Of a stretch of DNA of 64,000 nucleotides, positions 1 through 41,851 are shown in pieces. The first letter of the stretch is position 1; each line of letters opens with the position of its first letter. The notes beneath the pieces were generated by a model. The model saw nothing but the letters and a program-made list of their open reading frames with translations, had not been told where the DNA came from and made no database searches. The stretch is from Takakia lepidozioides (Eukaryota; Plantae; Bryophyta). The stretch covers positions 40,424,001 through 40,488,000 of the forward strand of contig CM060733.1 in the NCBI GenBank assembly GCA_030704615.1. Reading direction: 5' to 3'. Made by a program: the position numbers and the translations under genes.

Positions 1-700
1 TTTCTCAACAGAGTTGACATTGTTGGAATGGCGGATGGCTCGAGAGGTGGTATATGTCTTGGAACCATTTCTTTCTTTTTTGGATCGCGCAAAGCTCACA
101 ATATGCTCGTGTTTATGCTTGACCCACGTTACAAGGGGTTGTCATTGGTATCACAATATGTGGGCAAAGAGCGTGCTTTGCATATTGTGTCCCAATATGA
201 TAGCATGGTGTTAGAGCCTCTTTTGGTAAAGTGTTTCAAGGTCTTACATCAGGATACTCCGGCCCAATCACAGCCCACTTCCACAATGGACGAGATGTCC
301 TTATTTGGTGTGCATGACCACAATGAAGACATGACATTGACAGTAGTGAGAGAACAACTATCACATTTCAGAAGGACGAAGATAATTGAGGGTGAGTGCG
401 TGGCTCCTTTGAAATGGTGGAAAGAACACGAGTCTCTCTTTCCTTATGTGGGATTTTTGGCACGGCTAATCTTGGGCATAGTTGGATCTCAGATTGAAGC
501 TGAGAGGGTTTTTAGTATTGCAGGTGTCATAACAAGCTTGAGACGGTGAAAACCTTGATATGCTTGTGAGTGTAGTCAAGAATTGGCCAAATAATGCTAG
601 AGTTGGTTGCTTTAGTACTTCCATGAAAGAGTTTTTGGATAAGGAAGAAGTCATCTTAGATGAACTGAAAAAATGCAGATGGATCTGTATGTATTTGTAA
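1..700 (+). pseudogene. hAT transposase C-terminal fragment (dimerisation domain), degenerate
   Basis: ORF 28..549 has LDPRYK and the hATC signature PLKWWKEHESLFPYVGFLARLILGIVGSQIEAERVFS. It continues out of frame as ENLDMLVSVVKNWP. Confidence 0.85.
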
Positions 701-5539: not shown

Positions 5540-6880
5540 ATCACCCATTCATAATCTCCAAAGCCTTCCTGCCACACCCAGTACATAAACAGAGTACACA
5601 TAAGTTCTTTGCTTTGCATCCTCAATGCACCCACATTGGGCATACATGTCCACCAGGGCAAAGTTCAGAATGACATATGGTACAATTCCAGCTTTGACAA
5701 TGTCACCATAGACCTCTTTTGACCTTTTCCAGGGCTGCCAAGCTTGCACAAGCATTGCAATCACACAAAAACATGATGTGGTTGGGCTTCACCCCTTCCC
5801 CCATAATTTGATCATAGGTCTCCAAATCCACCATCCCACGTCCCTGCTGTGCATACCCTGCAATGCTTGTGAGTATGCACTTGCTTTCCAGCTTCCAGAC
5901 CTTTCTTGGCGTGAATCCACATCAGAGTTTGTTGGCACTAGGAAAGGGTTGAGACTGAGCTGCTCAACTTCTCCCTGGTCTTACTGGGTTTACATAGTGT
6001 GCCAAGCACAACATTGGTGCCAAAGCCTCCATCCAGTGCCCCTGCTGTGTATACCCTGCAAGCATCGAGTTCCACGACACCACATCTCGTTCAGCCATAC
6101 TGTTCCCTTCATGACATTTTGTTTGATCAAGCCCTCTGCCTCATCCAGTTGCCCTACACCACCACGGGGATCCACCATGCAGCCAAAATGATCCACTATA
6201 GGAGTGAGGCCATAATCTCAACTCACGGAATCAAAATAGTGACAGCCTTCATCCACCAGGCCCACATGGCTACATGCAGGGAGAAGGGATATGAAAGTGA
6301 TACCATCCGGCTTCAAGCCTTCCTGTTGCATTTTGTGTGAATAATTGTAGGGCCTCCCTACCACATTTCATACTGAGCATACCCTCCAATCATCACACCC
6401 CATGAGACAACATTTTAATCAGCCATATTGTTGAACACTTTGCACGCATCCTTCATACTCCCGCATTTGGAATACATATCCGCAAGGGCAGTCTCCAGAA
6501 TGATATCTGGTGTAATTCCAACTTTTATCATGCAGAACACTAGATCTCTTTCCCCTTTTCGAGGGCTCCTATGCTTGCAAACCCATTGAGAACACCAATG
6601 ATGGTGACCTTGTTGGGCATCACTCCCTCCCATTGCATCTGTACATTTCAAAAGCTTCCCTAACACCCCCACGTTGAACATATCCTATGATCATCGCATT
6701 CCAAGAGAGACCACATCTCGTTTAACCCTTCTGCCAAATACTGATAAGGCATCCTTCATACTCCCACATTTGGCATACATGTCAACTAGAGTCTCCAGAA
6801 TGATATCTGGGGCAATCCCAGCTTGGGTGATGTCAGCATGGACCTCTTTGCCCTTTTCCAGGGCTACTTGGCTGGTTTGA
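5540..6880 (-). pseudogene. PLS-class pentatricopeptide-repeat gene fragments inside the hAT
   Basis: Motifs LETALADMYSKCGSMKDACKVFNNM, PDGITFISLLPACSHVGLVDEG, HFGCMVD..GQLDEAEGLI and ALVDMYAQCGCIEDA; fragmented by frameshifts. Confidence 0.88.
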
Positions 6881-6901
6881 ACTTCGGTCTTACCACAAGA
6901 C

Positions 6902-9900
6902 CACTACAGGAAAAGGGGGGACCTTTGCGACGCCCGAGCCACGCCGCAGCGTTGGGAAAACGCCATTTTTGGGCAGGGGCAGGCGCAGAATTTGCGACGT
7001 CCGGCTGTCTCCCGGCAGTCGCATGGGCGTCGCCAAAATGACGTCGCAAAAATGCGACGTATGGGGGTCGCGAGCCCCCGCCCCAAATCCCGCGACTACT
7101 GGACGTCGCTTTTCAGGCCGTCCGCGCCGATGGCAGGGGCCTCCGTCGAGCGACGTCTCGCCGTCGCGGCCCTCAAGCCGACGGCGTTGGTGGGGGCGCC
7201 GGCGCGGCGTCGCATCCCTTTTTTTTTTCTAACCTGCCTGGGAGTCCTATCATAAAACCCAAAAACACGTGGCGTAAGCCGGGTGGTACGCCAAGCAACT
7301 ATTGGGCGTGGCAAAAAAAACAGCAGGAGCAGGAGTCGGGCTCTGCCACGCCCGGGCATGGGTTTTGGCGACGCTCTGGCGTCGTCTTTTTTTATATTTA
7401 ATCCAAAAGAAAAAAGACGTGGCGCAGGCAGGGTGGCAGGCTACGCGACGCCAGGGCGTCGCGGCTTGCGACCCTCGGACCAAAAAACACGTCGCAGGGG
7501 GTGTCGGGGGTTGCCGCCCGCAAATGGGATTGGCGACGCCCGACCGTCGCGGCGTGCGACCCCCACCCAAAAAACACGTCGCCATTGGCGACGTCCTGCA
7601 ATCGCGAGGCAGCCTGGTGGGGGGGGGGGGGGGGGGGGGGGGGGGTTGATTTTGGGGGTGAATTGGGGGTGGTTTTTTGTTTTTTGCCAGGTTTTGTTTT
7701 TGGGGATGGGAGACCTTACAGTTCTATTTATTTGATTTAGCAGGTACACAATTGAGCAAACATAAATCGAGGGTGAGGACAGTGCGACACATGAATAAGA
7801 TGGAAGATGGAAAGATGGAAATATATTTACAGGAAATGAGCTGAAAAGCTCACAAGGGTTCAGTAGGCTGACCCTGGGACCTACATGGACTAGGACTAGT
7901 CATCCTCATCCTCATCCTCAGTGGAGGACTCAGAGCTATCCGATGAGCCTGATGACTCCGCGCCCTTTGCCAGAGCACCTAAATGAGGCGGCGTTCCCCT
8001 AAGTCCCACAGAGCTCTCAACCAATCCCTGGCCATGACCCCCGACCTCATCCATACTAGTGCCCTGTAGTGCACTCATCCCCTCCGTGTTGGCTATGTTC
8101 TTCATGAGGGATTGCCAACCATGCTCATTGGCGTAGTTGTACTCTACCGGAGATGGCTTCCTCTCAAACGCACGTTGCTACACATGCCACAAATTAAAGT
8201 CAGTTCTTCGCGATGATGGAGCCAGAAAGAAATAACAAATCCATAAGGAAGTACGACTTACAAATCGCAAGATAAAACCCTTGGATCCACCGGTGCCCCA
8301 CTTGTGTGTGGATTCGTGCTTGTCAAGACGGACTGTTGTTGCTTCACGTGCCCGTCAAATTTGGCCTTGTTTGCGGCATCAGTCTCTCCCGCAATGAGTG
8401 CATCCCACAATATCTATCCCCCCCCCCCCTCCCCAATAATTAGTGAATTACACACATACGTTGCATCGAATCTACCTCATTAATGCACATGCGACAAATG
8501 GAAGGTGACATGATTCAGGATTTGCCAACCTGTGTAATTCCATAAGGTAGTTTGGGTATGGCCCCCTTTTCCATTGCCCTCCGAATGATCTGTCTGGCTC
8601 GGTACCTCTTGTCCTTCAAGTTTCGCCCCACCATCTCCATCACCCTTGTGTCACTCCAATTGCCCGGAAACCGGCGGTCTAACTCACGGGCATACGCCCG
8701 CTTCGCGCCAAAGTGCTGATCAACCCACTCGATGTGCAAAGGGAACCACCTCATGCGAGTTCGAAGGCTGGCTTCTTCAAAGCCTCCCAGAACGCACCGC
8801 AGGGGTCACCATGGCGATTCACCTCCACTGGTGGCACCACGATCTTTGCCAACTCCACGTCATGTATCGCCAAGGGCATGTTATTTTTCCCACCCTCTCC
8901 CTTCTTTGTAGCCTCCTTTCCCTGCTCCTTTGTTACCCCACTGCCCTCCCCCGTATGCACACTCACCCCTTCCTCTCCATGTGACTTCTTCTTCTTCTTC
9001 TTCTTTTCTTTCCCCTTCTCCACGACCATCTCCTTCCCCTACCCCGCTACTTTCTCTCTCTCATTCTCCCTCTCCCTTCTCTCTCTCTCCTCGGCAGCCC
9101 CTTCATTGATGGTAAAAGGGATCTCGGGAGATCGAGGCCTCTTCTTCTTACCTTTGGTGTTCGGGTCCTTCATGAACACCACGTGCTCTCCCTCATTGGC
9201 AACCCCACCCGACTGCATCAATGAGGCCAACCATGTTGCTGCCTCCTGAAGACAAATAACCCCTCCAAATTCAAAAAAAGAAACAAACAACAAAGAAAAT
9301 CATGCATGCAAATGAAAGGATAAATCATGGAACAAGGTGCGACAGTTGTACCTTTGCAAGCTTGTCCGACTTGCCCCCGGTGTCACCCGATGTGGCACGA
9401 GTCCCCGTTGCCAGATGTGCCCGCTCTATCCCCTCCCGGGGCGCCACTGGAAGTAGATTCCAGATGTGGAGCATAGCCTACGGCGGCGCCCCGTAGTCCA
9501 GGCCCTTCTTTGCTGACCGCTCAGGCTCAGGGGGCGTTGATCGGCTAGGCTACTCCGAACCGGCCCATACCTCCCCCCCCCCCCCAAATGTGTATCAGGG
9601 TAGAAGCCCTCACCCGGCTTGACTTCTTCGAGGCGCTTCGCTATCTTGGCCACTTCATTGGCCCTCCTCGTCTCCTCCTCCCTCATCGACAACAATGGGC
9701 TGGCAATGGAGGCTTTCAAAGGCCCTTGAACCTGACGTTGGGCCTTGGCAAGTGCAGCCTTTGAAGGGGTCGCTATGGGGGTGACATCCAAAAGTTGACC
9801 ATACCGGGCCCCCGAATGGATGATGTGCTTGCCAAGGTACATTTCACCCGCCTTGGTGGCCGGGGGTGTGCTCAACTGAGCATCCGGCTCAACAACAACC

Positions 9901-10330
9901 TCCTGAATAGGAGAGCTGGCTGAGCCGGCCCCTGGCGCATCCAAGATGTGGACAAGAGGGGGGGTACTGGCCTCGGGGGGCAGACGAGCCCTCCGGTTGC
10001 GGCTGTCGACGGGGCTGGTTAACCGTGAGATGCCCTGGCGCGTCATACGTGCCGGCAGAGCAAACGGATTGTCCGCCCCTTTCTTTGGGGCAGGGGACTT
10101 CTTCTGTTTCCCCATAAGCTGGCACATGTCATGCAAACCCACCAGTTGGCCTCATTAGGAAACAACCTCTACATTCCAGATCAAAAACAAAAAAAACCAA
10201 GCATGTCGGGGGCTGAGAGCAGCAAGTGCTCAGGGTCTCGAGAGGGGGCAACAAAGAGAAAAGAAAAAGGTGGGGGGGGGGGGGGTGGGGGGGAAAGTTA
10301 CTGAGCACCACCAACAGCTGCTGAGCACTA
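6902..10330 (-). mobile_element. truncated CACTA (En/Spm) element: one terminus plus TnpA-like gene remnants
   Basis: CACTACAGGAAAA at 6902 is followed by about 700 bp of GCGACG/CGTCGC subterminal repeats. Minus-strand exon-like ORFs at 7896-10142 include a TnpA-like segment (ELDRRFPGNWSD..VGRNLKDKRYRAR). No matching TAGTG end found; the right boundary is approximate. Confidence 0.7.
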
Positions 10331-18310: not shown

Positions 18311-21188
18311 GTAGCAATGCAATCAAATGATCTGGACTGCAATGAGTATCGTATGCAGATAAAAGCTCATGGCTATTGTGAACCAAAATGAACTGGTTGG
18401 ATTGACGTCCTGCACGAAGTCTACGTATTGTAGCAAGTTGTAGCTGGTAGGTACTGCATGATATGTTGTATAACATATTTGATGCTTTAAGAATGTTTAA
18501 GCTGCTTCTGCAGAAGTACTCAAGTATATCTATGTACACTTACAATGTAAACTCTTCGAAAGACTAGAGGTTCGGCTGTCTAAGTGGTTGTACCGCCAAC
18601 CAGGCGAGCAACCAGGAAAAATCCAAAACACCTTACCGCCCCTTGGAAGAGCTTCATCTTGTGTAGCTACACGAAAAACTCCACCGAACCTTGCAGTACT
18701 AGTGCCAACTTGAGTGACGCAATCGAGAGATTCAATGTCTGCTCTAGCAGAGCAAAACCGATCAATCGATGGTAGTGCTTGAAGGAGGCTTGAAGGTCAA
18801 TAACAGAAATGGTCGGTTCCTGCAAGACTCGAGGATGTTATCACTGAAAATCTCGATAAACTCCATGGATCCATATCGGGTCGGTATCATGACCAGGTTC
18901 AGTGAGTCCCCATAAAAAGAGCCTTGACGCGTGTGAGTGGATCCGATCATCTACAAATCTGGCCAGCGTTGCAACTTGCTCTTGCAGAGCGACGACGTCT
19001 TCGTCGACCCCAGCGTCCAGTCTGGTCTTGGTCCAGCCCTGACTACAGTGAAGTGAGACTGAAATTGTACAGATGCCAGGCATCCTGCAAGACCTGCTTC
19101 GCTTTTGCTTTTCAGCATCCTGGAAGCACCAGTTGTCCACATGTTCTAGGCACTAGGAGTCTTCTCATCGCCTCTGTGCAGCACGCCAACTTGCACCGTG
19201 AAGCTTCCTGGTTTTACCACGGGTTATCAATCCATGGTTGTAGACACAACCCCCTACAACCCCCAAAATCCCAACGGGCGTGGTGCTTTGAGACTGGGAC
19301 AATTTTGTGGTTGACAATCCCAAATTTACACAGTTTTGCCGCCTGACCTCTCCCGCCTTCGACAGTAAATAGGGCGACGCTGGACAACATTCAAAGGGGC
19401 GCTCCTTCAAGGGCTGTATGACATCCAACCATCCCATCTCCACATGTTCCGCATGTTTTCAATAACCGATTAACATGACATCAACACATGGAGAGCTCGT
19501 TAAATCGTGCAAAATACATCAATGACATTTTCAACGCTGTTTGCACCATTAAGCACTTGGAAGGTGGATTGCCTTTCCCTCTCTTCCCCTACCGCAGAGC
19601 TTGTCACGGTCAAAGAGAGAGTTTAGGGCAGGCGCCTGCAAACACAAAGTTTAGGAGGTAGCCAGGTGCAGCTGAATTCATATTTTTAAATCTAATCTTG
19701 ACATGCATATAATGTACTCATATGACATACAAATATTTAGTACATATGGGATACTGTAATACGTTAATAAGTGAATCTTACCCACAATTCCGTTGAACTT
19801 TCATACATTTTGCAGTTCAATTGAACTTTGTAAAGTTATAACTTGAGTTTAAAGGTCTTTTTGGTAATTGAATTGCGAGCTGATCAAGGGATCTGCAAAG
19901 TGCAAATGGCAATTCGATTGGATTTTACATTTTTGGTATGTGACGCAAAAGTTACGACGGTGCGTCCGACTAGTCCGACCCAGGGCGTTAAGGGTTAAGT
20001 GCATAGGATACCTGCCAGCGAGTGTGGAAGACGGAGTACACGTATACAATGTCACAATGTCTCGAGATCAGCCTGCGAGAGGTGATGTTAGGAAGGACTA
20101 TATAAGGACCAGGTGTGCATACGTTCCACAGTTGTCTTGAAAGCTACGTAAGTGGCTTTTACAGAGTACGTACGTACCGGGTGTTAACTCTTCGAGCGAA
20201 AAATTTCAAATGTCACGTGCTCGTACATGAAATTATGCAACTTGGCCTGCAATTCGAATGAGCACAGTTTGCTTTTGTACGATGACGTGATGTAGAATTA
20301 TGATCTGGAATTTAATGTGATTCAATTAGTAATAATTTCAGACGTGGATTGAGATTTGAGATATGTTTGAAGACTTCGGACCTGGAGTAGAGACTCATGC
20401 GGCTGTGCAAAATAGGCTGTAAATCCATTGCTTGGTTTATTAACTCAGCCCCTGGCAATTCCATCAAATGTTGTGAATAATTTGAACTAGGCTCCCTCAT
20501 TTCTCGTAGACACATGGGGATTCCTGATGTATAGCACTGGTCGACAGGTAGAATTTGATCCCCAGCATCTACCTAGCTAATTGCAATAGGCTTTAGCTAG
20601 ACTCAGGACCTGGGTATATGTACAGGCAGAGCTAGGATTATAATACTCATTAGAACTTTTCGGTTAGATCTATCTACATTGATTAGATTTTGTGTACACC
20701 ACCATCATCACGTTTAAGAAGTTTTCCATTGAAACTGCAATTTTGATATTATACAGGATCTAGTGCTCAAGAATTTATAGTACTGCTTCTGGTTCCAGCT
20801 AGATTCTCACTAGCTAGATATATACTGGTGCACCTGTACTCAATAGTGGATTGAGAGTGGATTCACCTTTACTAGACTTCATCCAGCTTTACGAGCCCTC
20901 TCCGTCTCTCTGACTGAAGCGGATTTTGCAAGCCCCCCTCTCTCTAGTCGTTTATTTTATCGATCCCATCGGCCACTATAAACAGCTTTATCGAACAGTA
21001 CTGTCGTGAACGATTTTCTGGAATTCTGTGAAGCGTCCCATTGAACTGATCCGGGTCTGGCAACCAAAGATGTTCGACTGGACCTGTAGATCACCATGTT
21101 ATAAGAACTGAATGATCCAGACAATTTGGCCCAAGTTGGAAGGCGGTACGCACTAGCACCCTTAATTTGAGCCATTCTGGCTAAGTTC

Positions 21189-21600
21189 TGTTGAAAAACT
21201 CAAAGCACACAATACTATCTAGAACAACAATTCAAAGATTCAGGCAATCAAAACACACGATGGTATCAGAGCACTTTACACTACTGCAATTCCACCATAA
21301 GGCATCAACATACAAAGAAGTTTTCAGCAAATCAAAGACTCTCTCTAGTAAGCCTAAATACTATTCATAGTAACGATTGCTCGGCGCCGGCGGGAGTCTA
21401 GTAATTCAAAATAATGCTGTCACTATCCATCCGTAAATAGTACACAGTAGCAACACCTTGGCCAACTGCATGTCTCCGTTAAATCCTAGTGTAACCTAAC
21501 TGGCCTCTGACTTAGATATTCCGTCATGGAATAAATCAGTGTAACTCGTAACTCTTGATGTAACATGGTCACACTGCGATTTCAACCAGAAAAAACAACA
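21189..21600 (-). repeat. Copia-1 3' LTR
   Basis: Direct repeat of 26091-26510 with about 7 substitutions and one 8-bp indel by eye. Confidence 0.96.
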
Positions 21601-21702
21601 CTCCCACTCACTGGTTATTCCATGGCAAAAAAAAAATTCCTACGTAAACAAAATGAATAGCCAATGTGTGCACAAAAAAAAAAAAAAAAAAAAAACTCAC
21701 AC

Positions 21703-24700
21703 TCAGATTGGTTGCACTATCAGTCCAAGCATGCTACGGAATCGATTAAACTTGTCAGCGGTAAGAGGCTTCGTTAAGATATTTGCGATCTGTGCATTCG
21801 TATTCATATACGTCATCTGGATTGCACCCTGTGCCTGAAAATCTCGCAGCATATGATATTGCACATCAATGTGCTTTGTTCTTCGATGAAACTCCGGATT
21901 CAAGACCAATTGGATTGCACTTTGATTGTCTGAATATAAGGGAGTAGGGTCTTTCTGTGTGTGCCCAAGATCAGGCGGCAACCTTCGTAACCAGATTGTC
22001 TCCTTCGCAGTTAAACAGGCTGCTATGTACTCTGACTCTGTCGTGCAACCTGCTGTGTACATTTGTTTTCTGCTCACCCACGTAACAGCTGCTTGATTGA
22101 GTAATGTGACACTCCCACTTCTAGATCGTCGATCGTCCAAGTCCCCTGCATAGTCAGCATCAGCAAAAGCCGTAAGAGTGTTTGAATTCTTGCAACGTGA
22201 GTAGCACAGACAATAGTCTGTTGTCCCCCTGAGATATTTGAATATCCTCTTTACAGCTGTGCAATGAATTCGTTTGGGATTCTGTGAATACTTGGCCACA
22301 GTGCTGTCAGCCGCATATGCAATGTCTGGCCGTGTGCCAATCATGGCGAACATCAAGCTCCCAACTGCCTGTTGGTAAGGAAATTCATGTTCCTCTTCTT
22401 CATCTTCACCTCTTGGTAAATGCAACTGCACATTGGGATCTGCAGGTGTACTCACTGTATGTGCATCCCCAAATCCAAATTTCTGGATTATGAACATCAC
22501 GTATCGGTGTTGGTCTATGGTGATCGATCGCAATCCCCTGTTTCTTTCAATGTGAAGGCCAACATAGCATTCGGCGCTTCCAGCTTTAACTTCAAATTCC
22601 TTGTTAAGAAAACTAATCATACTATCCAGTATTTCTTTGCTCTCCGAGCAACCTAGCCCGTCATCCACAAAAATGGTGGTGAATAACTTTGGCGCTGAGT
22701 TGCGAAAATACACACAAGGGTCTGTTGCGCTGGGTTGTAGGTCATATTTGACCAGAAAATCATTGAACCTCGTGTTCCATGCCCTCAATGCTTGACGAAG
22801 TCCATATAAACTTTTTAATAGTCTACAGACTATCTTTTCTTCTCCTGGCTTCACATAGCCTCTAGGCTGATCCATATATATCTCCTCCTGTAACTCTCCA
22901 TGCAGGAAAGCGGTTTTTATATCGAACTGAATCATTTCCAGATCCTCAGCGGCAGCCACTGCTAATAGGGTTATGATTGAATCGAATTTCGTAACGGGGG
23001 CAAAAGTTTCTTGAAAATCAATTCCATACTCCTGCGAGTATCATTTTGCAACCAACCGGGCTTTATACCTCTCAATACTCCCATCTGCTCGAGGCTTTAC
23101 CTTGTATACCCATTTGCACTTCACTGTGTGTCTTCCCTTTGGCAGATCAACAAGCATCCACGTTTCATTTTTGTGTAACGAGTCAATTTCTTCCTTCATT
23201 GCTAGCTCTCACTTAGCTCGATTAGGAGACATCATCGCCTCCTCATACCGTTTTGGCTCCTCTAGTAATGGTATGTATTCAGTTATTCCAGCAAACGTAG
23301 GGTAATTACTCTCCCACTCGCCGAATTGCCTGTGGTGGTCGTCGAGATCGACATACTTCTGTTCCCTGACTTTGCAAGCTTGGTGCAACCCGCTCAGGCC
23401 CTGTGTTTGCTGCATGAATTTCGCCTTCATCCATGGCAATAGGTAGATCCACTACTAGCTGAAGCTCAGGATGCTCATTATGCTGGTCAATCGTATTCCC
23501 CTCAGAATTTTGTACTTCTGGAGCCATTTTGTCTCCCACTCCCTCAAGTACCATAGTGCATGTGTTAGGTCTGCTCATCATTTCTTCGATGGGTGAAGAA
23601 TTACGGTTACCCTTCTCATCTACTAACACATCACGGCTGATGACTATGTGCTGCTTCTCAATATCCCATAGCCGATACGCCTTAGATTCCACACTGTAAC
23701 CAAGAAATATGCACTTTTTGCTCTTGGCATCCAATTTTTTTCTCAGCTCTTTGGGTACATGTGAATATGCCATGCTACCAAACACTCGTAGATGGTTGAT
23801 GTCAGGTTTCTTCCCATTCCAGGCCTCCAAAGGTGTTTTCCCATTCAACACCCTGGTTCCCGTTCGATTTAGGGTGTATGCAGCTGTAGTGGCAGCTTCT
23901 GCCCAGAAATTAGGACTGAGACCTTTTGCTTGCAGCATACATCTAACTCTTTCAACCAGAGTCCTATTGTCCCTTTCGATGACACCATTTTGCTCTGGGG
24001 AATATGGCGCTAAAAGTTCCTGCCGAATTCCATTTCTCTCAAGGAAAGTCTTAAATTTTGCGCTCAAGAATTCTCCTCCTCTGTCGCTTCTAAGCTTTCT
24101 CACTGTATGTCCTGTCTCTATCACCGATTCCACACACAGCTGCTTGAAGAACTTGAGAACTTCTCCTTTTGTTTTCATGCAATACAAGATCTTATAGCTG
24201 CTATGATCATCTTTAAACATGACAAAATGTTTGGAACCTCCATGCGAGTCTACATTCATTGTACACACATCAGCATGGTAGAACTCTCCAGGAGTCTGAA
24301 CCCTCTCACGTTCTTCATTTACTGGAAACGCAACTCTGTGATTCTTGCCCATGGCACAACCTTCACAGAACTCCAGATCTGCATTAGGGTTCAGTATTTT
24401 CATACCATCGACGATCTGTGTTTTCTCCATTTGTTTAATCATGTCGACACTGATGTGTCCAAGTTGATCATGCCACCTTTGAAGACTTGCTCCCCCAATT
24501 GTCACCGCCACATTTGCTTGAATATTATCCGTCGACAATACCATGTTTGCTTGCAGAGATTCTCCCGTAATCACTTTGATTTGCAGTTTCCAAAGGTTTC
24601 CCTCTCTCATTCCAGTCATCATAAGAGGTCCCCTTCCCTGATTTGCATACAGCTTACAAGTACGCTTATCATAGATGACGATGTAATCTCTGTCTACAGC

Positions 24701-25954
24701 CTTCGCTACTGAGAACAGATTCTTTCTGAGGTTAGGTACAAACAACACGTTGTGTATTGTTCCCTTTCTCCACTCACTTCCTGCTAGGGTTAGGATATCT
24801 ATATCCCCTATTCCACTTGCCCATACTGCAACATCAGTGGCAACTTGCACTCCCCAACGATGAGATTCAATCTTCTTAAGATTTTTGAACCATTGCATCT
24901 TGTTGGTCATGTGCTCAGATACAGCATTGTCCGAGTACCAGGATATATCGTCTTCATCGCCAACTTTCTCTCCAATTGACGTGCTGTTGTACACTGCTGC
25001 ATTAGCATTGCTAATATGTACAATCTTTACCAGATCATTGACAATGTTCTGATCAGTGTTTCTTCCTTGTGTCACTGAGCCATCATCGACACGCTCTCTT
25101 TCTTCATGATGAAATGCAGTGGCAGCATAGGCATCGCTCATCTTAATGGATTCCACCATGTTAGCAGCGATACTCTTCGTACATTCTCGCTCCCAGTGCC
25201 CAACTTCACCGCAGGTATTGCACCTCGTTTTCTTTTTCAACTCCGCTATTCTTTCAGCTCTCTCCTTCTTCTGCTCCTTTGTCAGAAAACTTCCACCGCT
25301 TGTGGATGAGTTATGTCTTCCTTTGACATGCTTTGTGAAGAAAGCTTTATCCATAACATCCTCCGTGTTTCCTCGCGCTTTTCTCAATGCTTCTTTCTTG
25401 AGTAACCTAGATTGCAAGTTGTTCAACGTCCTCTCGGCAGCGGGTACACTATCCCATGCATCTAAGATGTTCTCATAGCTTGGAGATAAAGTGCACACTA
25501 TCTTTGCCATGATAGCTGATTCAGTCATCTTCTCACCAAGATCACTCAACTATTTTGCCATCAGTTCTATCTTGCTGATATAACTGGAGATGCTCTCATT
25601 TTCTTCCATCTTGAGATGATACATCTTGCTTTGTAAGACATGAATGTTCTCGGTAGCATTTTGCTCATGAACTGCCACTAGTTTCGCCCACATCTCTACT
25701 GAGTTTGTGCAGTTTACCAACTGTTGCAAGTGATTCTTATCTACTCCTTGAGTAATATGCATGCAGACATTGCTGTCCCTATCATCTCATTCATCTTTAT
25801 CCGAGGCCACTGCTCTCAAATCCTTCCCACTGACAAGAGACCATAGCTTCTTGGCTCTTAGGATAATCATCATTTGAAACTTCCATAGAGAAAAATTCTC
25901 TCCTGAAAATCTCTCTATCTGCATCACATCTTTCGATGTGGTAACTGAACTCAT
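21703..25954 (-). pseudogene. Copia-1 gag-pol polyprotein (interrupted)
   Basis: CNTCGEVGHWEREC, WYSDNAVSEHM, LRSDRGGEF..PEQNG, FDIKTAFLHG, FVDD, DADYAGD, TKHID. Confidence 0.93.
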
Positions 25955-26090
25955 CTTTGCTGCTATTTCCTAGATCTCTCTGCTAGTTCTAGTTTCATTC
26001 GTGAACAAGATCAAGAAAGAACTCTCAGAAATAAAATTGTTCACGAAAGCACTCTCTGATTGAGCTTCAAACGTTTGTGGGCCCATAACC

Positions 26091-26510
26091 TATTGAAAAA
26101 CTCAAAGCATACAATACTATCTAGAACAACAATTCAAAGATTCAGGCAATCAAAACACACGATGGTATCAAAGCACTTTACACTACTGCAATTCCACCAT
26201 AAGGCATCAACATACAAAGAAGTTTTCAGCAAATCAAAGACTCTCGATAGTAAGCCTAAATACTATTCGTAGTAACGATTGCTCGGCGCTGGCGGGAGTC
26301 TAGTAATTCAAAATAATGCTGTCACTATCCATCCGTAAATAGTACACAGTAGCAACACCTTGGCCAACTGCATGTCTCCGTTAAATCCTAGTGTAACCTA
26401 ACTGGCCTCTGACTTAGATATTCCGTCATGGAATAAATCAGTGTAACTCGTAACTCTTGATGACTTGCAGTAACATGGTCACACTGCGATTTCAACCAGA
26501 AAAAACAACA
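26091..26510 (-). repeat. Copia-1 5' LTR
   Basis: Adjacent to the PBS and flanked by the TSD. Confidence 0.96.
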
Positions 26511-27635
26511 AGTTCTATCGATCTATTAACGCTACCTGTAGTTATACCGAACCGCTCTGCCTACAATATGATGCAGTACTGAACTTGGAGTTTTGTTTGA
26601 GTACTTTTTGATCGAGATTCTATGTGTACACAACAGAATACATCAGGTTTGGGGATAATGGACTACTCTTGAGTCGAGATGCAACCCACAAAATCAAACG
26701 TTGCTATATCTATCTGTTTTCTTTTTGTAAGAAGGCCTGCTCAGGGCATCAACAATTGGTTGGCTAAAGTCTCCTCTCAGTAAACTCTCCTTTTCAACTT
26801 CATCTGGTGAAACCAAAGAACGTTCAACGATTTGATGACCAAACTGTAGAGCATAAGATAGAGGATTTTGATAATGAGGACAGGTGCTTACAAGAGAATC
26901 TCGCGTCATCGAACCAAGTTCCATTTTGTGGAGGAATGTCCCCGTCAAGCTCGGGAACGGATCCTTATAATGGCCAGAACGACAGACCGAAAAGAAAAAG
27001 GATAAGGGCCCATGTAAGAACGGTGATGAAGCGCAGAGTCAATTACGGATGACACATATTGCTATGGAGCGGAATAAAAGAAAACAGATGAACGAGCGTC
27101 TGTGTGCCCTTCGAGTACTTATGCCTGGCTCTTACGTCCAGAAAGCTAACCTTCTGGACAGGAGGATGTAAATATGTTGAATCCCTGAACTATAAGTCTT
27201 CGTAGTGATTGATGATGGTAACTATGGATTTGATCAGGCATGTACACAGATCATCTCTGAACTTCCTGTGAGGCCATGCTAGCTGATCTAACTTAATCTT
27301 GAAAGATGTAATGCACCTTTCCGTGCAGGTCCAAATCTGGCAACCTCAGCTGGAAGGCAGTAGATTCATAAGAATAGCTGAAACATGGATGATCTGCATG
27401 TCTAGACACATGGATTATATGTCGTTGAGTATTTGAAAAATATGTAATCTCCCGGGACTTGGGACTGGTCCTTAGTTGGGAGATTGTAATTCTTTGAGAT
27501 AAACCGAACTTCAACAATGTGGACATCCTAGTAGAGCTCCAGATGTACAAACACCAGAGAAATTCATTGTTCACCAGGATGACGATACATGTGAATGGAG
27601 TGTGAATGTTCAATGTAATGTTTTCGTAATGTATT

Positions 27636-28013
27636 TATTGAAAATACTGATTTCACTGCTTGCTCATAGTTGTTTATAGAGTAGCCGGTAAGTTATGAAG
27701 AAGCTATCCAACACTAAGAAGTACGCTGCTTATCAATCTACAAGGCAATCCATGGAATCAATGATGCTCACGCATCTTTAAGCTTAACTACACCACGCTA
27801 TGAACATACATAAAAACTAACTGAGTATCTTCTGCCACCAAAAAAATAAGGTGCTACTAAGTGAGGGAGATCCAACTAGCTAGAGATTCAAAATGTGATT
27901 GACTGGCATCTGTGATTGTGACTGCTCGGTGGACTACCACCTATTTGCTGACTATGACTATTCGACCAGCATGGTCCAGATGTCAATGACGGACTGGATC
28001 TTCGATTTCAACA
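27636..28013 (-). repeat. Copia-2 3' LTR
   Basis: Reverse complement of 29505-29894; PPT at 28014-28021. Confidence 0.94.
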
Positions 28014-29504
28014 CTCCCACTCAGTCCGACATTGTATGCATGCTTCAAAGATCGCTTGCACAGAGATTGCTTGCTGGGGAATGCAACCCAAGCATGGAGC
28101 GAAAACGAAGGAACTTGTCTGGACCAAGAGCCTTATATCGGAAATCTGATCGTTCGTGTGAACATACTAAATGTCAATTTCTCCCTTCGCCTGGTTCTCG
28201 TGAATGACATGGTACTGAACGTCTATGTGCTTTGTTCGACGATGGTACTCTGGATTGTGAACCAGATGGAGTCCATGAGTCTCAGTAACCAAATAATCTC
28301 CCTCGTAGCCATGTGAGCCGCAACATACTCCGATTCAGTTGTCGATCCAGCAGTACACGCTTGTTTCCGACTGCTCCAAACAATTGCTCCTTGGTTCAAC
28401 ATAATGACACATCCGGATCTGGATTTTCTATCATCTATGTCACCAGCATAATCTGCGTCGCAAAATCCTGTGAGCAGATTTGTGTCTTGCTTCCCATTGT
28501 AGGTCAGAACAAAATGAGATGTTCCCTTCAAGTATTTCATGATCCGTTTCACAGCGTTGTAGTGCACAGGTCTGTGACTTGATGCTTATTTCGTCATTGT
28601 ACTCACTGCATATGAGATGTCAGGACGACTCCCGATGCTTGCAAACATCAAGCTTCCAACCATTTCCTGATATGGAAATTGGTAATCCATGATGTTTTCC
28701 TTGTCTTCTTTCTCTGAGTCACCCGAAGGAGAATAGAAACTCATTTGAGTATTAGGGTCGGCAGGAGTAGTCACTGCCATTGCATTTTTGAAACCATACT
28801 TCGTGATCATCTTCTCAATGTAGACTTTCTGATCGATTGTCCTGAGTTGCCGATCTCTTTTAATTCGCAAACCGACATAACAGTCTGCCTCTCCCACTTT
28901 GATTTCAAATTCCTTGCCCATGTATTCAAACATGTTGTCAAGCCTTGCTGACTCAACGCAACAGGCCAGTCCATCATCCACAAATAGAGATGTGATGATT
29001 TTGGGCTTCTCTTTACTGTAGTAAATGCAAGGATCTACCGCACTTGGTACCAAATTGTACCTAAGCAGAAAATTGTCAAACTTCGCATTCCAAACTCGTG
29101 AAGCCTGCTTCAGTCCATACAAACATTTTTTCAAACTGCATACCAGGTGCTCTGTGCCTGGTGCCATGAAGCCCGGCGGCTGGATCATGTAGATCTCTTC
29201 TTCGAGTTCTCCATAGAGAAACGCGGTTTTAATATCAAATTGCATGATATTCATATCCTCGGATGCTGCAATGGCAAGAATGGTGCGCATGGAGTCATGA
29301 ATACTTGACGACGGGAGAAAATGTTTCTGCATAGTCAATACCATACTGCTGTGAGAATCCCTTGGCAACTAATCGTGCCTTGTATCTCTCAGCTGTTCCA
29401 TCTGATTTTGTTTTTAGTTTGCCCATTTACATTGCACCGCTTTGCGATCACGAGGTTAATTATAGATGCCTGGTCTCCCTGTCCAATATCAGATGTCACA
29501 ATAC

Positions 29505-29894
29505 TGTTGAAATTGAAGATCCAGTCCGTCATTGACATCTGGACCGTGCTGGTCGAATAGTCATAGTCAACAAATAGGTGGCAGTCCACCGAGCAGTCAC
29601 AATCACACATGCCAGTCAATCACATTTTGAATCTCTAGCTAGTTGGATCTCCCGCACTTAGTAGCACCTGTATTTTTTTGGTGGCAGACGATACTCAGTT
29701 AGTTTTTATGTATGTTCATAGCGTGGTGTAGTTAAGCTTACAGATGCATGAGCATCATTGATTCCAAGGATTGCCTTGTAGATTGATAAGCCGCGTACTT
29801 CTTAGTGTTTCAAAATTGTTGGATAGCTTCTTCATAACTTACCGACTACTCTGTAAACAACTATGAACAAGCATTGAAATCAGTATTTTCAATA
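29505..29894 (+). repeat. Copia-2 5' LTR
   Basis: TGTTGAAA...TTCAATA followed immediately by the PBS. Confidence 0.94.
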
Positions 29895-32800
29895 GGTTAT
29901 GGGCCCACAATCGCTTAATGCTGTGTGAGAGGTTTTGTTTCTGTAGAAGTAAGGGTGATAGAAGAAATGGCGTTGGTGAAGACAGATTCTAAGAACGTGA
30001 CGAATATTGAGAAGTTCACGGGAGATAACTTCTAACTATGGAAGTTCCAGATGCAAGTGCTATTCCGAGCAAAGAAGCTTTTACGTGTTGTTGAGGGGAT
30101 AGAATTGAGAGAAGAAGCTTTGGATCAGGATGAGTGGGATGACAAGGATATTTGTGCTTCTTTGTACATCTGCAGGTCGGTAGACAATAAGCGTATGCAG
30201 CAACTCATTGCATGCAAGACATCAGCAGAGATGTGGAGTCGTCTCATCACCATTCATGAGCAGTGCGCAAGGGAAAATATCCATATGCTACAGCAGAAAT
30301 TTTTTGAATACAAGATGAGTGATGGTGATGATGTAGCTGAACACATTAGCACCATAGAGTCCATGGCTTGCCAGCTTAACGATCTTGGGGAGGCCACAAC
30401 AGATCGAGCAGTAATCACCAAGATTATTTGCAGTTTACCTCCTTCATACCGACACATGATCTCAGCGTGGGACAGTGTTCCAAAGGATGAGCAGACGATC
30501 AAGAAACTTACCGTAAGACTGCTAAAAGAAGAAACCCTGAACAAAGAACGAGGAGCATTTGATTAAGCCAGAGATAAGGCTTTTTTTGTTGGTCGGCCAG
30601 GTAATATGAACAGCAGTGGAAGCGGTGATGGTAAGCCAAGATTGACGTATGCTGAACGTCAGGAAAAGATAAGGAGAATCGAGGAATTGAAGAAACAAAC
30701 TCATTGTAATGGTTGCGGAAGAAGAGGACACTGGGAGTGCGAGTGTCCTGATAAGAAGGCAGCAGAGACGAGTCAAGCAAATCAAGTGGAGAGTATGTCT
30801 CCAGAGGTCAATATTAGCACTGCATACACTGTTCACGGGGCTCAATCTTCTAGAGTTACCATGGCTGAGAGTAACTGTTGGTATGCTGATGGCCGTGCAA
30901 GTGAGCACATGACCGATAAGAGAAAGTGGTTCAAGAATTTGGAACCAATAGCTAAGGGGAAGTGGCATGTCGTGGTCGCTAGCAATGATTCTGTGTGGGT
31001 TGAGGGAGTTGGGGATATCGAGATTATGAGTCTTGTTGGAGACAAGTGGGAGAGAGGAGTGATTACAAAGGCTTTGTATGTCCCTAAGTTGAAAAAGAAT
31101 CTATTCTCAATCGGACAGGCAGCAGACAAGGGAATTGTCACTGCCTATAACAAAGAGAGTTGCAAATTAATTTGCAATGAGGGACGAGGAAGAATTGTGA
31201 TGGTAGGTTTGCGTGAAGAGAAACTGTATAAGCTGCAGTTGAAGGTCATTATACCTAAGAGTATCGACAAGGGTTTGTTAAGTGGCAAAAATGAGAGCAT
31301 CGCTTTCTTGAGTGAGTCAAATCCTAGCAATCTGCATCTCTGGCATTGTCGTTTGGGATATCTAAATCATGCTATGATCAAGAAAATGGAGGCATCACAG
31401 AGTGTAGAATGTCTGAAGATAGGCAGTTTGAGTGAGGCATCAACCTTCTGTGAAGGATGTGCCTATGGCAAGAGCCATAGACAGAGCTTTCCTGTCAATG
31501 ATGAGAGAGTAAAAACTGAGAAAGTTGGAGATCTCTTACACACGGGTGTGTGTGGACCGATGAAAATAGACTCCATCGGAGCGTCAAGGTATTATGTAGT
31601 TTTCAAAGATGATTTCTCAGGGTACAGAATGGTATTCTGCATGAAGAAGAAGTTTGAAGTCATAGAGCACTTTCGTAAGGTCCTTAAGCAGACATAACAA
31701 GAAACAAAGAACAATGTCAAGATAGTTCGTAGTGACCGAGGGGGAGAGTTTATGAGTTCAGCTTTTAAAGAGCTTTGTGAGAAAGAGGGAATCCGCCATG
31801 AGCTGACAGCTCCTTATACACCAGAGCAGAACGGTGTTGCCGAGAGAGAAAATAGAACCATCATGGAGTCAACAAGGAGTATGTTGCATACAAGCAATAT
31901 TGGCCTAGAATTCTGGGTAGAGGCGGTACTAACGAGTGCTTACATCCTAAATAGAATAGGAACATGGTTACTGGATGGGAAGACACCAATCGAAGCATGG
32001 TCAGGAGCAAGACCATTTGTTGTTCATTTCAAGATTTTTGGATCAGATGCCTATTCTCACATTCCAAAGCAGATGAGATCCAAACTTGATCCAAAGTGCA
32101 AGAAATGTGCATTCATAGGATATTGCACCAAGAGCAAAGCATATCGGCTCTGGCACAATGACACTAAGAAGGTGATACTCAGTCGAGATGTTGTGTTTGA
32201 TGAGGGATCGTACACATCTACAACAGAGTCATTGTAAACTCAAAGTGGAGTCTCCATCATGGATCTGTATGATGATCTTGAGGACTCAGTGGAAGTACCT
32301 GAACCAGTGGGAGCAATGCAGGGAACAGTGGATGCAGTTGAGGCAACAGAAAGAATTGATGGGAGTTCAATGACGAAATAATGAGCAAGCGGTATATGAA
32401 CCAGTGGGAGTTCAGCTTGAAGTGGTCCTTGATGGATGTGTGGAGAAACCATATGGGCAAATGACACGATACGAAACTTGATCACGGCAAGCACCAACGA
32501 GGTATGGTGATTGGGCTTATTTTGCTGAGGTGCAGTCTTTTGCTGGAGTAGCGAGTTCATTGGAAGAGCCCCATGATTATTGGACTGCAATCAACTCAGA
32601 ACAGAGAGTCGAATGGCAACAAGCGATGGACGAGGAATTCAGCTCTCTCATTCAAAACGAGACATGGTTGCTTACAGGAGGGTGCCATAGAGTTTGTAAA
32701 GGAGCTAGAGCGGCTCTTGCAACGCGTGCAAGCACAAATTAAAGCGCAGGCGCTCATATAGAGAGCTCAACAATGTGAGTGGCCGTAGCCATTCTGAAGG

Positions 32801-35800
32801 TTCACTGCTATTGCAGCCATTTTTCTCATTCTACTTACTACATATGCCGCCAAGTACAGTAGTGGATCCTAAGTGTATCAATGAGAACTTATATTACGAA
32901 CCTGTCAGGGATGTCCTAGCAGAAGGAGAGCAGACGCCAAGTCTGAGGTGGCTGATGTGGAGGTCAAGGTGGTGGGTTCCGATGCTCTGGTGAAGATAAT
33001 GTCCCAACGGAGACCTAGGCAATTGCTGAAGACAATTATCGTGCTCGAGGGTCTGCATCTGACAATCTTACAACGGTCGAGCATACTGTGTTGCACTCTT
33101 TTAATGTTAGGGTAAGTTCCCCTTCATGTAGACACTTAGCAAAATTAATTGCTTATACAGTTGTGTTCAGGGCAATCTGAATTTGTGGATTGAGTTTCGT
33201 AAGTATCGGATTCAGTAGTAAACTTACAGTAAATGTCATTGGTTGTTCCATCGTCTCTGATAGTTTATCGGGCTAATGATCTGTTGTCCTCGCTTATTGT
33301 TGCATAAGCACAGATTGGGTCGGAGTGTAGATTGACAATGGAAGAAATTGCAGCTGTTGTGCATCAAACGTTAAATGTCATCCACTTCACACACTGCTGA
33401 GTTTAGGAGCTTCGCAATATGCACTAGTATTAAGCTGAACCAATCATTGTACAGACATGTATAGCCATTCACGACTGTACAACATCACACAACAGTGCTA
33501 TATTTCCTTGTAGCTTGAATTTCCCGGACCTTATTAGTGTCAATTACAAAGGGTGATCAAGGCTCAGCTTCAATCTCGGTGATCAGCGCTTGAGTTTATG
33601 AGAAGTCTCAGAGAAGTCAACCGATGGTGCTTCAGTTTCGGAGCTGCCACCGCTAGGGTAGTTGGGATGCAACTTGCATTAGTTATTAGTTTTACCTTAA
33701 CTTTCTCTCGTAGATAGGTGTGACTTCGAGAAGTGCTGTTGATATAGTTAATAGAGGAGCTGCCTCTCACGGAGGTCTCACATATATATATTGTGTGTCC
33801 ATCTGGTCAGAATTCAGGCTTAGTGTTCATCTCAGAGAGCATTCTCTAAGTCTCTTATGTCTGTCTCAAGCAGTGTCCTCATTTTGTTTACTGTCAGCTT
33901 TCTAATACACCCTCCTCAAGATGGAGGACATAGAAAACTCACAAGTTATGGCCCACGCTACCGGTATGTAGACAAGTTTGCAGGAAAGGACTTCATGCTT
34001 TGGAAGTTCAAGATTGAGACAATGCTAAAAGCAAGGAGCTGCGGGGTCTGATTGATGGGAATGAAGTCAAGCCCAGTAGAACGGATGTTGCCGCGCTTAC
34101 TACCTACACCAAGAAGGAGAGTAGAGCTCTTAATCTCATTGTGCAAAGTCTTTCTGATAGTCAGTTGCTCACTGTGAGGAGAGAGACCACCGCAAAGGAA
34201 ATTTGCCCCGGAGGCTCTTGAAAGAAGATATGTTGACAAAGGTTTGACCAACCGATTGTTTTTGACAAGGAAGTTCTTCGATCTCATCGATGAGTCCAAC
34301 TCACACCAGGGAATCACTTAAATAAGTTGGGAGCCATGGCTGATGAGTTGGATGCTATCGGAGCACCCATTCCAGTAGACGTAAAGGTCATTGTATAGAG
34401 AGAGAAGACTTTGGCCGAAGCCGGCGTAACTAAGAGCCACTTCGCCTTGCCTCTACTGCCCCCTTTCGGGGGTGGGCCCTATATATATATATAGAAAGAG
34501 GGGGGTGTCCTGTGGGACACCCGGTGACTTTTGAGAATAGAGGAGATAGTGGTACCCCTGGGTACTCATGGGTACCCTGAGAGACCTAGGGGACATTTGA
34601 GGTGCCGGATTCCAATTGGCGTTTGTTGGTAATAATAGTTGTGAGTGAACGGAGTGCCATGGGATGGATTTCTTTGAAGCATTTGTAGATGGGTAGGATG
34701 GGAATTTGGAAATTATCGTGGATATCATTAATAATGACGTTATGGATGCCCCTCGGGTACCAGCGGTAATGACGGTTAACAGGTCAATTTTCCAGCCACG
34801 CCTTCGGATTGCGAGGATGAGCGGGGCATATTTTTGACGTTTTTCTAAAATTGAGTCGTTTGGGTAGCGATCATGGCAAAATGTGAATTCAAAATGGATG
34901 ATGAGTTGTGGGGATGGTGAAGTGGGAGGTAAAGTGTTGATGGGTAGGCCATGTACTAGGAGCATGTCCGGGCAAAGCCTAGCTGGGCATGATGGTACAT
35001 ATGCATGGTAGCAGCCATGGTGGCACGGTGTGGTCGGGTGGCCAACCTTGGTAGGTGTCTGCGTGCATGAGCGAGAACCATCGAGTTTCAGCACGTTTTT
35101 TAAAAAGCTTATGGAGGTGCTAGACTGCATGGTTATGTCGCATGATATGTAGGCCATGTATGATCGGGTGTGTACATTAGCTGAGGAGATGTGGCCAAGT
35201 GTCGCAAGCTTGGTGGGTGGTTGAACATAGCGGGTAGCATGGGGATGGGAATAAGTGTGGCCAAAGTGTATTCGTTGGTGGCCCATGGCGTACCTGAATT
35301 TGAGCGTTTGTAGGATTTGTGCGTCAGTAGTAGCTTTGGCTGGCCAGAAGTGATTTGAGAGTTTATGGTGTAAAATATCAGATTGAGTCCATTTTTGGAT
35401 GTGTATTTTGGTATGGCTGATGGAGGCGGCAGCTTGTTTGTCTGCTTCTTTGGTCAGAGTGGTTAGAAGGTTGCGGACTGGCCTAGGTGCAGGGGGTCTG
35501 GGACTGGGGGTATGAACCAAAAGAGATGGGTGTGAACGATGTGGATCATAGGGTCGTTCGTTGGTACTACTAAGGGTTGGGAGGTGCCGAGTTGAGCGAG
35601 CTATAGGTCTGCTTCCTTATTTCCATGAATACCAGTGTGTAAGCAGACTTTGTGTAAATGGACTGGGTGGTTTATGGAGGTGGCTTTTTGAAACAATGGC
35701 GGCAATAAGGTTACGGTCGGGGTGATGGTGGTGGGAGACGTGGTTTCAGATAAGATATAGGGAGGTGAGGCTGTCAGTGAAGATATAGTATGGGGGGGGG

Positions 35801-40005: not shown

Positions 40006-41851
40006 TGTGGTGCATGAACACATGGTAATCATGTGATTTCATGCCGGATAGTTTTTTCTTTACCACGTGTTTTTTGAAAGCTGATGCGTATCTGTGGGTA
40101 CTTTAAGGTTTCGCACAGTATCCAATAAAACTTTCAACTCAGCTTCAGTTAGAACATAAGGAGCAGGAGGCATGATTAACGTATCTGCCCTGTCTGGATG
40201 TCGATGCAACCACAATGATGGATGCAGCCCAAGTAATTGAAGATCAGGCCGAACCTTCAATGTATCTTTCTCCCCAAAAACAGTCTTAATGCTATTTTCT
40301 GCAAAGTTCTTCTCGCAATGCATAGCATCAAACGTATGTTGTATGAGGAGGCCCTCCCAGTAAGGCAAGGCATATAAGATTGATAATTGCTTCACTCCGT
40401 GAGATTTAGAAGGGTTTGATGGCGAAACTGGTTTCCCCCCTGCTGCTATCCATGCAATCAGGTCAATTGCACGTTTCTTTATTTGTGTTCCCGTCTGCGT
40501 TTGTGGAGCCACTCTATGCTCAACAACACCATTCAACAACCTTGATCTTGTATACGGATGGTTGTGGGCAAGAAATCTCCGATGGCCCAGGAACACAGTC
40601 TTCGAACATGCATGTAAATGCTGTGAATCCACCTCGGGTCCACAGGCTGGACAACCAGCATAACCTTAGGGTAACCTGACCCGCGAGCAAGCCATATGCA
40701 GGGTAATCATGGATTGACCATAGCAGCAATGCCCGTAGCAAGAATTGGCGTTGTTGGAGAGCTTGGGAAACATCATAAGCTATGATGCCTCTCCACAATT
40801 CTTGTAGCTCCTCTACTAGGGGCATCAAATACACATCAATGTTCGCAGATGTAACAGACTCCTTTCCAGGAATAAGGAGTGCTATCATGACGAAAAACTA
40901 TTTTGTCATCAACCATGGAGGCAAATTATAGTTGACCAACAGGATGGGCCATGTGCTCCAACTCGTGGATTGAGCACTGTATGGATTTACTCCATCTAAG
41001 GCTAATCCAAATCGTACATTTCGTGGTTCTGAAGCAAAATCCGCAAATGTGGAGTCAACGTGGGCCCAGGCTTTGCTATCAGCTGGATGTCGAACCAATC
41101 CATCCTGACTCTTATGTCTGAAGTGCCATGTCATAAGGTGCGCGATTGATTTGCATCGATACATGCGTTTCAACCTTGGGATGACAAGGAAATGTCGTAG
41201 TATTTTTCTGGGTACAGTCCCACGACCAGGAATGTAACGCGACGTCTTGCACTCCGGGCAAAAATCTGTTTTTTCATTCTCCCCACGGAAGAGTACACAG
41301 CCTTTCTCGCAGGCATGGATCTAGGTGTACTACAATCCCATCTTCGCAATCATAGTTCTAGCTTCATAATTAGTTTTCGGCAGAGAATTTTGTTTCGGCA
41401 AAAAACTGTTGCGCAACAATCCAAGAAGCTCATCCACAAAGCCATTGGGACACTTGTGGGTGGTGCACAAGTTAAACAAGTGCAAAGTAGCTTCAAATCG
41501 GCTGATCGAGCTCCCTTCGTAGAGTTTACACTGAGATTGTTGAAATAGCGTATCGTAGTTGGGGTCAACTCCGTGACTCAGGTTTGGGCCATTCTCTGCA
41601 TTCTCTGCATTGTCCATGGATCTTTCCTCGTTGGGGCTGTCTTCAGCCCGAGTTCCACCATTAATCGGATCCTCCCTGTTTGCATCCGCAAACTCAAAAG
41701 CTTCCTGCAATGCTCGTTGAATTTCTGCCTCCACACCACCTTCATGATCCGTATTGTTCTCCCTTTGATTAGGCACCTGCCCAAACTCAGCCCGATCCTC
41801 ATCGTCATCAGAATCAGTATGTCCCTGCATCCCGTGTTTCCCACGGTTCAT
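40006..41851 (-). pseudogene. CACTA TnpD (Transposase_21/tnp2) catalytic transposase fragment
   Basis: RHPADSKAW, RNVRFGLALDGVNP, DVYLMPLVEEL, HDYPAYG, DAMHCEKN, GMKSHDYH; frameshifted and truncated. Confidence 0.93.

Follow-up and report, generated by a model that had tools for sequence, protein, structure and literature searches.

The closest described counterparts of the locus analysed here are the subfamily Ia basic helix-loop-helix (bHLH) proteins SMF1 and SMF2 of Physcomitrium patens and FAMA, SPCH and MUTE of vascular plants, which have in common with it a pre-bHLH KRKR segment, the bHLH, the GDQASI-GGAIEFV stretch, an ACT-like SMF domain and an intron between YVQ[RK] and GDQ. Subfamily Ia bHLHs are also found in bryophytes without stomata, namely MpSETA of Marchantia and its orthologues in the Ricciaceae (PMC11923412). 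Riccia lacks SETA, and the Ricciocarpos copy is highly divergent and has been described as ‘evolving into pseudogenes’, alongside loss of the structure that it builds (PMC11923412). Stomatal gene families are reported as lost from seagrasses (PMC13695793), and a review cites work on the Takakia genome as a case of a bryophyte without stomata that has lost stomata-related genes (PMC11363000). The Takakiales lack stomata but possess a seta that elongates (PMC7270291). We analysed a stretch of 64,000 nucleotides from the moss Takakia lepidozioides (assembly GCA_030704615.1, contig CM060733.1, positions 40,424,001 to 40,488,000; hereafter the window, numbered from its first nucleotide) and found in it the remains of such a gene. 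With a probability of approximately 0.92, this was a once-working SMF/FAMA-type Ia bHLH gene of at least four exons on the + strand, which is now an unprocessed pseudogene.

The full set of conserved blocks of the SMF/FAMA type was recovered, in the order of the full-length proteins, between positions 26894 and 33400 of the + strand (Table 1). The original prediction had named a dead bHLH Ia gene with a bHLH, a GDQASII segment and an SMF domain, and these parts were found as claimed by Pfam, blastp, tblastn and motif reading, the gene pieces being searched and scored one by one. The pre-bHLH segment GGMSPSSSG...RPKRKRIRA occupies 26930-27010, with weaker similarity extending from 26894, the furthest-upstream homology to Ia proteins. 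The bHLH piece carries the Ia-type basic region and helix 1 pattern (SQRMTHIAVERNRRKQMNEHL...LMPxSYVQ[RK]), with four replacements and one extra codon (TTA, 27043-45) in its core. A search with a 66-residue bHLH piece against 1.84 billion protein clusters, each represented by a single sequence, gave 614 proteins at E <= 0.001, the top match having an E value of 1.4e-12 and 69% identity. The best 150 of these 614 matches were all of Ia type; the hallmark QRxTHIAVERNRR was present in 143 of them, and a one-residue variant of it in six of the remaining seven. Named matches included Raphanus FAMA, the Selaginella proteins FAMA1/“SPEECHLESS” and FAMAL1, a Nymphaea bHLH57-like protein, and proteins of Physcomitrium, Diphasiastrum and Psilotum. 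With the bHLH piece as query, a word-index search of proteins gave zero candidates sharing three words, because the conserved words of the relic are broken.

Downstream of the bHLH core, the loop and helix 2 motif GDQASI[IV]GGAI[ED][FY]V[KR]ELE is present as GDQASII and EGAIEFVKELE, with a single G to E replacement, its two halves being parted by an inversion; the second half belongs to EGAIEFVKELERLLQRVQAQIKAQ, which begins at 32678 on the + strand and contains GAIEFVKELE. The ACT-like domain is distributed over two frames (32936-33070 and 33064-33111) and is 68% identical to fern and lycophyte FAMA-type proteins. The C-terminal piece scored 58-64 bits on FAMA/SMF-type proteins, whereas bHLH57-like proteins gave approximately 47-48 bits and short Ia proteins 36-44. 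The relic also has the K of YVQK, ‘GDE’ and ‘ALR’ in common with moss SMF-type proteins, residues that also occur outside mosses.

Table 1. Features of the gene relic and of the transposable elements in and around it (window positions).
Feature	Position	Strand	Basis or remarks
Exon A, pre-bHLH part (GGMSPSSSG...RPKRKRIRA)	26894..27010	+	tblastn against Selaginella FAMA1/SPCH-named protein and moss SMF-type protein
Frameshift, net +2, RPKRKRIRA against CKNGDE	27011..27012	+	frame differs between the two pieces, with two bases in between
Exon A, bHLH basic region, helix 1 and loop, 44 residues	27013..27144	+	Pfam HLH, E 1.4e-7; representative search
Intron 1, 5' part	27145..27635	+	donor GC (27145-46) in place of GT; ends in target site GTATT (27631-35)
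GDQASII, first seven codons of exon B	29458..29478	-	translated reading of sequence
Inverted gene piece: intron 1 tail with AG acceptor and second copy of target-site duplication (29479-29504), GDQASII (29458-29478)	29458..29504	-	sequence reading
Exon B remainder, (E)GAIEFVKELERLLQRVQAQIKAQ...	32678..32774	+	reading of sequence, tblastn; single-copy contig across Copia/exon junction
Putative intron 2	32775..32908	+	putative donor GTGAGT at 32775, acceptor cag 32906-08; placement inferred
Exon C, ACT-like/SMF domain (AKSEVADVEVKVVGSDALVKIMSQRRPRQLLKTIIVLEGLHLTIL / NLTTVEHTVLHSFNVR)	32909..33111	+	PF22754, E 8.7e-4; blastp, 6e-17; tblastn in two frames
Intron 3 (GTAAGT...CAG, 202 bases, phase 0)	33112..33313	+	sequence reading, frame arithmetic
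Exon D, IGSECRLTMEEIAAVVHQTLNVIHFTHC and TGA stop	33314..33400 (coding 33314-33397, TGA 33398-33400)	+	tblastn/blastp to C-termini of Ia proteins
Copia 1, long terminal repeats 21189-21600 and 26091-26510, target-site duplication AGTTC 21184-21188 and 26511-26515	21189..26510	-	long terminal repeat pair, target-site duplication, gag/protease/integrase/reverse transcriptase domains
Copia 2, 3' half: 3' long terminal repeat 27636-28013, then RNase H and remainder of reverse transcriptase	27636..29457	-	long terminal repeat pair, RVT_2 domain, pol-end translation
Copia 2, 5' half: 5' long terminal repeat 29505-29894, primer-binding region, gag, protease, integrase, reverse transcriptase start (...NETWLLT)	29505..32677	+	long terminal repeats, domains, contigs
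hAT dimerisation domain	28-549		Pfam
tnp2 (CACTA-type) transposase fragment	40060-40632		Pfam
Copia pieces	49269-50081		Pfam

Two elements, Copia 1 and Copia 2, have the organisation of Ty1/Copia retrotransposons, with paired long terminal repeats (LTRs), a 5-base target-site duplication (TSD) and domains in the order gag, protease, integrase, reverse transcriptase (RT) and RNase H. Copia 1, with LTRs of 412-420 bases, lies upstream of the recognisable relic. The LTR pair of Copia 2 forms an inverted repeat of 378-390 bases (27636-28013 and 29505-29894); an interpretation of this repeat as intron sequence was rejected, Copia 2 domains adjoining both LTRs. At the outer ends of Copia 2 lie GTATT (27631-35) and its complement (29500-04), which constitute a proper 5-base TSD solely when the 3,220 bases from 29458 to 32677 are turned back. 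This same operation joins ...ATA ATT to GAG GGT GCC (GDQASII-EGAIEFV) with no base lost or gained, and also joins the RT halves of Copia 2 in frame. Given that TSD, exon and RT are all restored by un-inverting the segment, Copia 2 appears to have entered intron 1 in antisense orientation, with breaks in its RT region and in exon 2 being rejoined in inverted order at a later time. The original prediction had placed a Copia element in the intron and an inversion in exon 2, and both were confirmed, the former as Copia 2 with its TSD GTATT in intron 1, and the latter as a base-exact cut, at both halves, between GDQASII and GAIEFV.

No bHLH protein can be made from the relic, and its lesions, like its anatomy and the TSDs, are matters of direct reading, whilst the right inversion junction also stands in an independent contig. 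Beyond the inversion and the net +2 frameshift ahead of the bHLH, the donor of intron 1 is GC, and use of the next GT downstream would break the frame. Exon B contains an in-frame TAG at 32759-61, exons B and C would be one base out of frame if intron 2 were spliced at its natural-looking sites, and a frameshifting deletion at approximately 33064-33070 in exon C has removed around four codons (HTNI in relatives). The frameshifts of the original prediction could thus be read at 27011-12 and approximately 33064-70, together with the TAG at 32759. Owing to the frameshifts, the stop, the donor change and the inversion, the relic is no working Ia member, and it does not have the open reading frame of a protein that pairs with a IIIb bHLH (SCRM/ICE1). 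Its residues have also changed: 12 of 64 near-invariant columns (at least 95% invariant across 31 full-length working relatives) differ in the relic, in comparison with 0-3 in each of those relatives. These 12 include R to K in YVQK, which is normal for mosses, GG to EG and, in the basic region that contacts DNA, ERNRR to ERNKR.

As introns are retained, the relic is no processed copy. Moss-type SMF genes that appear intact were also observed in two metagenome assemblies, L001 (ENA ERZ24794420) and L003 (ENA ERZ25073694, a 481-kb contig), which indicates that these environmental assemblies include chromosomes of plants, probably mosses; other moss-type matches (P0009, P0041 and P0003) originated from metagenome assemblies or an unrelated run and are uninformative on the Takakia genome. 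Intron 1 of the relic follows YVQK, the universal position between YVQ[RK] and GDQ, and both L001 and L003 have an intron there. Among the best 150 bHLH matches, 49 continue past YVQ[RK] with GD, as spliced, and approximately 90 with V, as in read-through of a GT donor. An exon-skipped isoform (P0015) restarts just ahead of ADIEV, where intron 2 of the relic would end, and the last part of an exon-skipped angiosperm isoform (P0059) starts at the border of intron 3 and exon D. The FAMA-like intron positions claimed in the original prediction therefore held fully for intron 1, whilst introns 2 and 3 fit these isoforms but L003 is without intron 3, which may be an old intron that the Takakia lineage has retained and other mosses have lost. 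The possibility that read-through of intron 3 gives a duplicate C-terminus was rejected, since exon D is a much better match and the ends of intron 3 are canonical and in phase.

The N-terminal part of the gene is missing. Neither six-frame motif scans nor tblastn searches, for which fern and lycophyte proteins and nine proteins of moss type served as queries, detected a recognisable N-terminal coding region in the 64-kb window, and the moss motif SPCSVISGFTK, which lies approximately 85 residues ahead of KRKR in moss proteins, was not found in the window. The original prediction had placed the upstream Copia (21189-26510) inside the N-terminal exon; this was not supported, as there is no N-terminal homology at the flanks of Copia 1 or anywhere else in the window, including all sequence upstream of 26894, and the first Ia homology lies 384 bases past the element.

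The assembly was compared over 28020-33450 with contigs that had been assembled independently from publicly available runs of this organism. A single-copy contig, at depths of 37 and 58 in two runs, spans 32589-33450 with zero differences, from which it follows that the junction of Copia 2 with exon B, the right inversion junction, is real. Multi-copy contigs (depths 255 and 461) connect 32677 to 29456 on opposite strands, which is the uninverted state as carried by other copies of the family. No second contig covering exons C and D was found in the sample at 80% likeness, a comparison that an older paralogue of less than 80% identity would escape. Two runs that are presumed to be RNA had nothing on exons B to D, which is no sign of silence, given that SMF genes are expected to act in sporophytes.

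The decay of the gene was compared with the divergence of the LTRs, as the original prediction had proposed. The LTRs of Copia 2 differ by a Kimura two-parameter distance of 0.041 and those of Copia 1 by 0.017, or 0.020 and 0.009 per lineage. From 11 changes not typical of mosses over 63 near-invariant codons, with approximately 2.25 non-synonymous sites per codon, the relic was estimated to have undergone approximately 0.085 neutral changes per site since the loss of constraint (rough range 0.04-0.15). Decay would thus precede the arrival of both Copia 2 and Copia 1, and suggests that constraint was lost at a time approximately four (two to seven) times more remote than the Copia 2 insertion, which is still recent when set against the age of the lineage. 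If between 1e-9 and 1e-8 changes per site accumulate each year, release would fall very roughly 8-85 million years ago, an order of magnitude that assumes neutral decay.

The order of events and their relative timing may be reconstructed as follows. Selection would have been relaxed at the outset, allowing the +2 frameshift, the GT to GC donor change, the TAG, the deletion in the ACT-like domain and the replacements of invariant residues to accumulate; the N-terminal coding region would have been lost at some time, or was perhaps never part of this copy. Copia 2 would then have inserted antisense in intron 1, duplicating GTATT, after which breaks in its RT region and in exon 2 would have been rejoined without loss of a base, leaving 3,220 bases inverted. 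The younger Copia 1 would have landed upstream last.

Several points weigh against a once-working gene with this history. The placement of the relic in subfamily Ia was judged by match ranking and motifs rather than by phylogeny. The match of the ACT-like piece to PF22754 (E 8.7e-4) lies under Pfam's cut-off, because the domain is broken and only part of it stands in one frame. No listed single-copy contig bridges the left junction (29457/29458), where there are 47 unique bases between repeats, and the runs possibly derive from the assembly's own sample and so are no test of other individuals. The absent N-terminus means that the copy may be a partial duplicate that never worked, and the decay clock is rough, being based on 11-12 changes among which lineage-specific functional change is possible. 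The left junction and the repeat-rich nature of the region could also be taken to mean that the inversion is an artefact of assembly, or that the fragments are pieces of a gene captured by a transposon. This is very improbable, as the gene halves and the Copia halves are exactly complementary at the base level with nothing lost, the 5-base TSD is regained just by undoing the inversion, and the right junction is present in contigs built independently from two runs. Furthermore, the three introns appear to be at family positions, the blocks are colinear from the pre-bHLH segment to the stop, and no single element's ends enclose the relic.

Accepting a dead Ia bHLH gene, its significance depends on whether it was the only one. 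The relic is probably what remains of Takakia's stomatal master regulator, and we give slightly better than even odds to its being the sole Ia bHLH of an astomatous moss, and hence a molecular fossil of a lost stomatal programme or of the last function of SMF. The Takakiales are astomatous (PMC7270291), a review refers to loss of stomata-related genes in Takakia (PMC11363000), a single contig covers exons C and D, so that no close paralogue is indicated, and the K of YVQK, ‘GDE’ and ‘ALR’ are as in moss SMF-type proteins. However, these residues are not exclusive to mosses, a paralogue below 80% DNA identity would escape the contig comparison, and a blank in protein collections, from which Takakia is absent, is uninformative. 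No mention of an SMF pseudogene in Takakia was found in a literature search, outside of which lay the Takakia genome paper. There is a lesser, though considerable, chance that the relic is a decayed paralogue or partial duplicate, with an intact SMF-type gene elsewhere now or at the time the copy arose, and that it was perhaps dead on arrival without an N-terminal exon or promoter. The lack of N-terminal homology throughout the window would be accounted for in this way, two SMF-type proteins are kept in Physcomitrium, and the relic is too well preserved for an ancient loss. Yet the N-terminal Ia region is poorly conserved and the surroundings are transposon-rich, such that its absence could as readily be due to simple deletion or decay, no contig of at least 80% identity was found besides the locus itself, and the published statement of stomatal gene loss in Takakia (PMC11363000) also argues against a duplicate.

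Should the relic indeed be the sole Ia bHLH, its good preservation (approximately 0.085 changes per site, some four times the age of Copia 2, whose LTRs diverge by 4%) would point to a late release of constraint. The gene would then have been under purifying selection through most of a lineage of approximately 390-465 million years and released in the last few percent of it, implying either a late loss of stomata, at odds with a ‘primitively stomata-free’ position, or the recent dropping of a non-stomatal role of SMF; we regard this proposal as tentative and on balance unlikely. A role in the seta would not explain the loss, because the Takakiales keep an elongating seta. It has long been asked whether early moss lineages were without stomata from the outset or lost them later, and the absence of a gene cannot alone date such a loss. 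A relic in which all domains of the master regulator, and apparently its introns, can still be recognised is proof that the gene was once present in the lineage, and permits a rough dating of when it ceased to matter. The relic also lends itself to comparison with the second Takakia species.

The window consists mostly of transposons (Table 1). A Copia-type gag (…FAGKDFMLWKFKIETMLKA…) was observed at 33857-34218 on the + strand, approximately 450 bases past the stop of the relic, so that its 3' flank is also transposon sequence. The region 6000-10000 has a G+C content of 53-54%, in comparison with approximately 44% elsewhere, and contains open reading frames of 137-238 residues without a Pfam match. 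Among the window open reading frames subjected to Pfam scans or visual reading, the ERD7-like gene that had been proposed as a neighbour was not located. Copia 1 and Copia 2 are 83% alike over their LTR end and primer-binding regions (26054-26099 and 29886-29931), indicating that the two elements are from related families, and contig depth places the Copia 2 family at approximately 7-15 times single-copy depth. The gag-protease-integrase reading frame of Copia 1 (747 residues, 23306-25549, - strand) was compared with 5.8 billion proteins, and its top relatives, metagenome proteins and proteins of Riccia sorocarpa, were only 38-40% identical, as expected for an isolated lineage that is absent from protein collections. 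Ten window open reading frames had no exact record in a 15-billion protein collection, which does not represent the Takakia genome, and an exact look-up of the Copia 1 reading frame likewise gave no record.

In relation to known systems, the relic differs from SMF1, SMF2, FAMA, SPCH and MUTE in that it is not open, owing to its frameshifts, stop, broken donor and exon 2 inversion, in that it is without an N-terminal region and in its changes at 12 of 64 near-invariant residues. A protein sequence can still be given for the SETA copy of Ricciocarpos (PMC11923412), whereas the lesions in Takakia are explicit and structural. As in the accounts of stomatal gene loss in seagrasses and Takakia, regulators of a lost trait would have vanished from an astomatous plant; those accounts appear to describe the absence of genes (PMC13695793, PMC11363000), whilst here a datable relic and its mode of destruction remain. 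Copia 1 and Copia 2 share LTRs, a 5-base TSD, a primer-binding region and domain order with Ty1/Copia elements in general, but Copia 2 departs from the typical element in that an inversion with its second breakpoint in a host exon has split it, making the locus a clean natural case of an inversion with breaks in a retrotransposon and a host exon. The decay or loss of an Ia bHLH together with the structure that it builds is already documented, and to this the Takakia relic adds a state complete enough to prove former presence, the mode of its destruction and a datable release from constraint.

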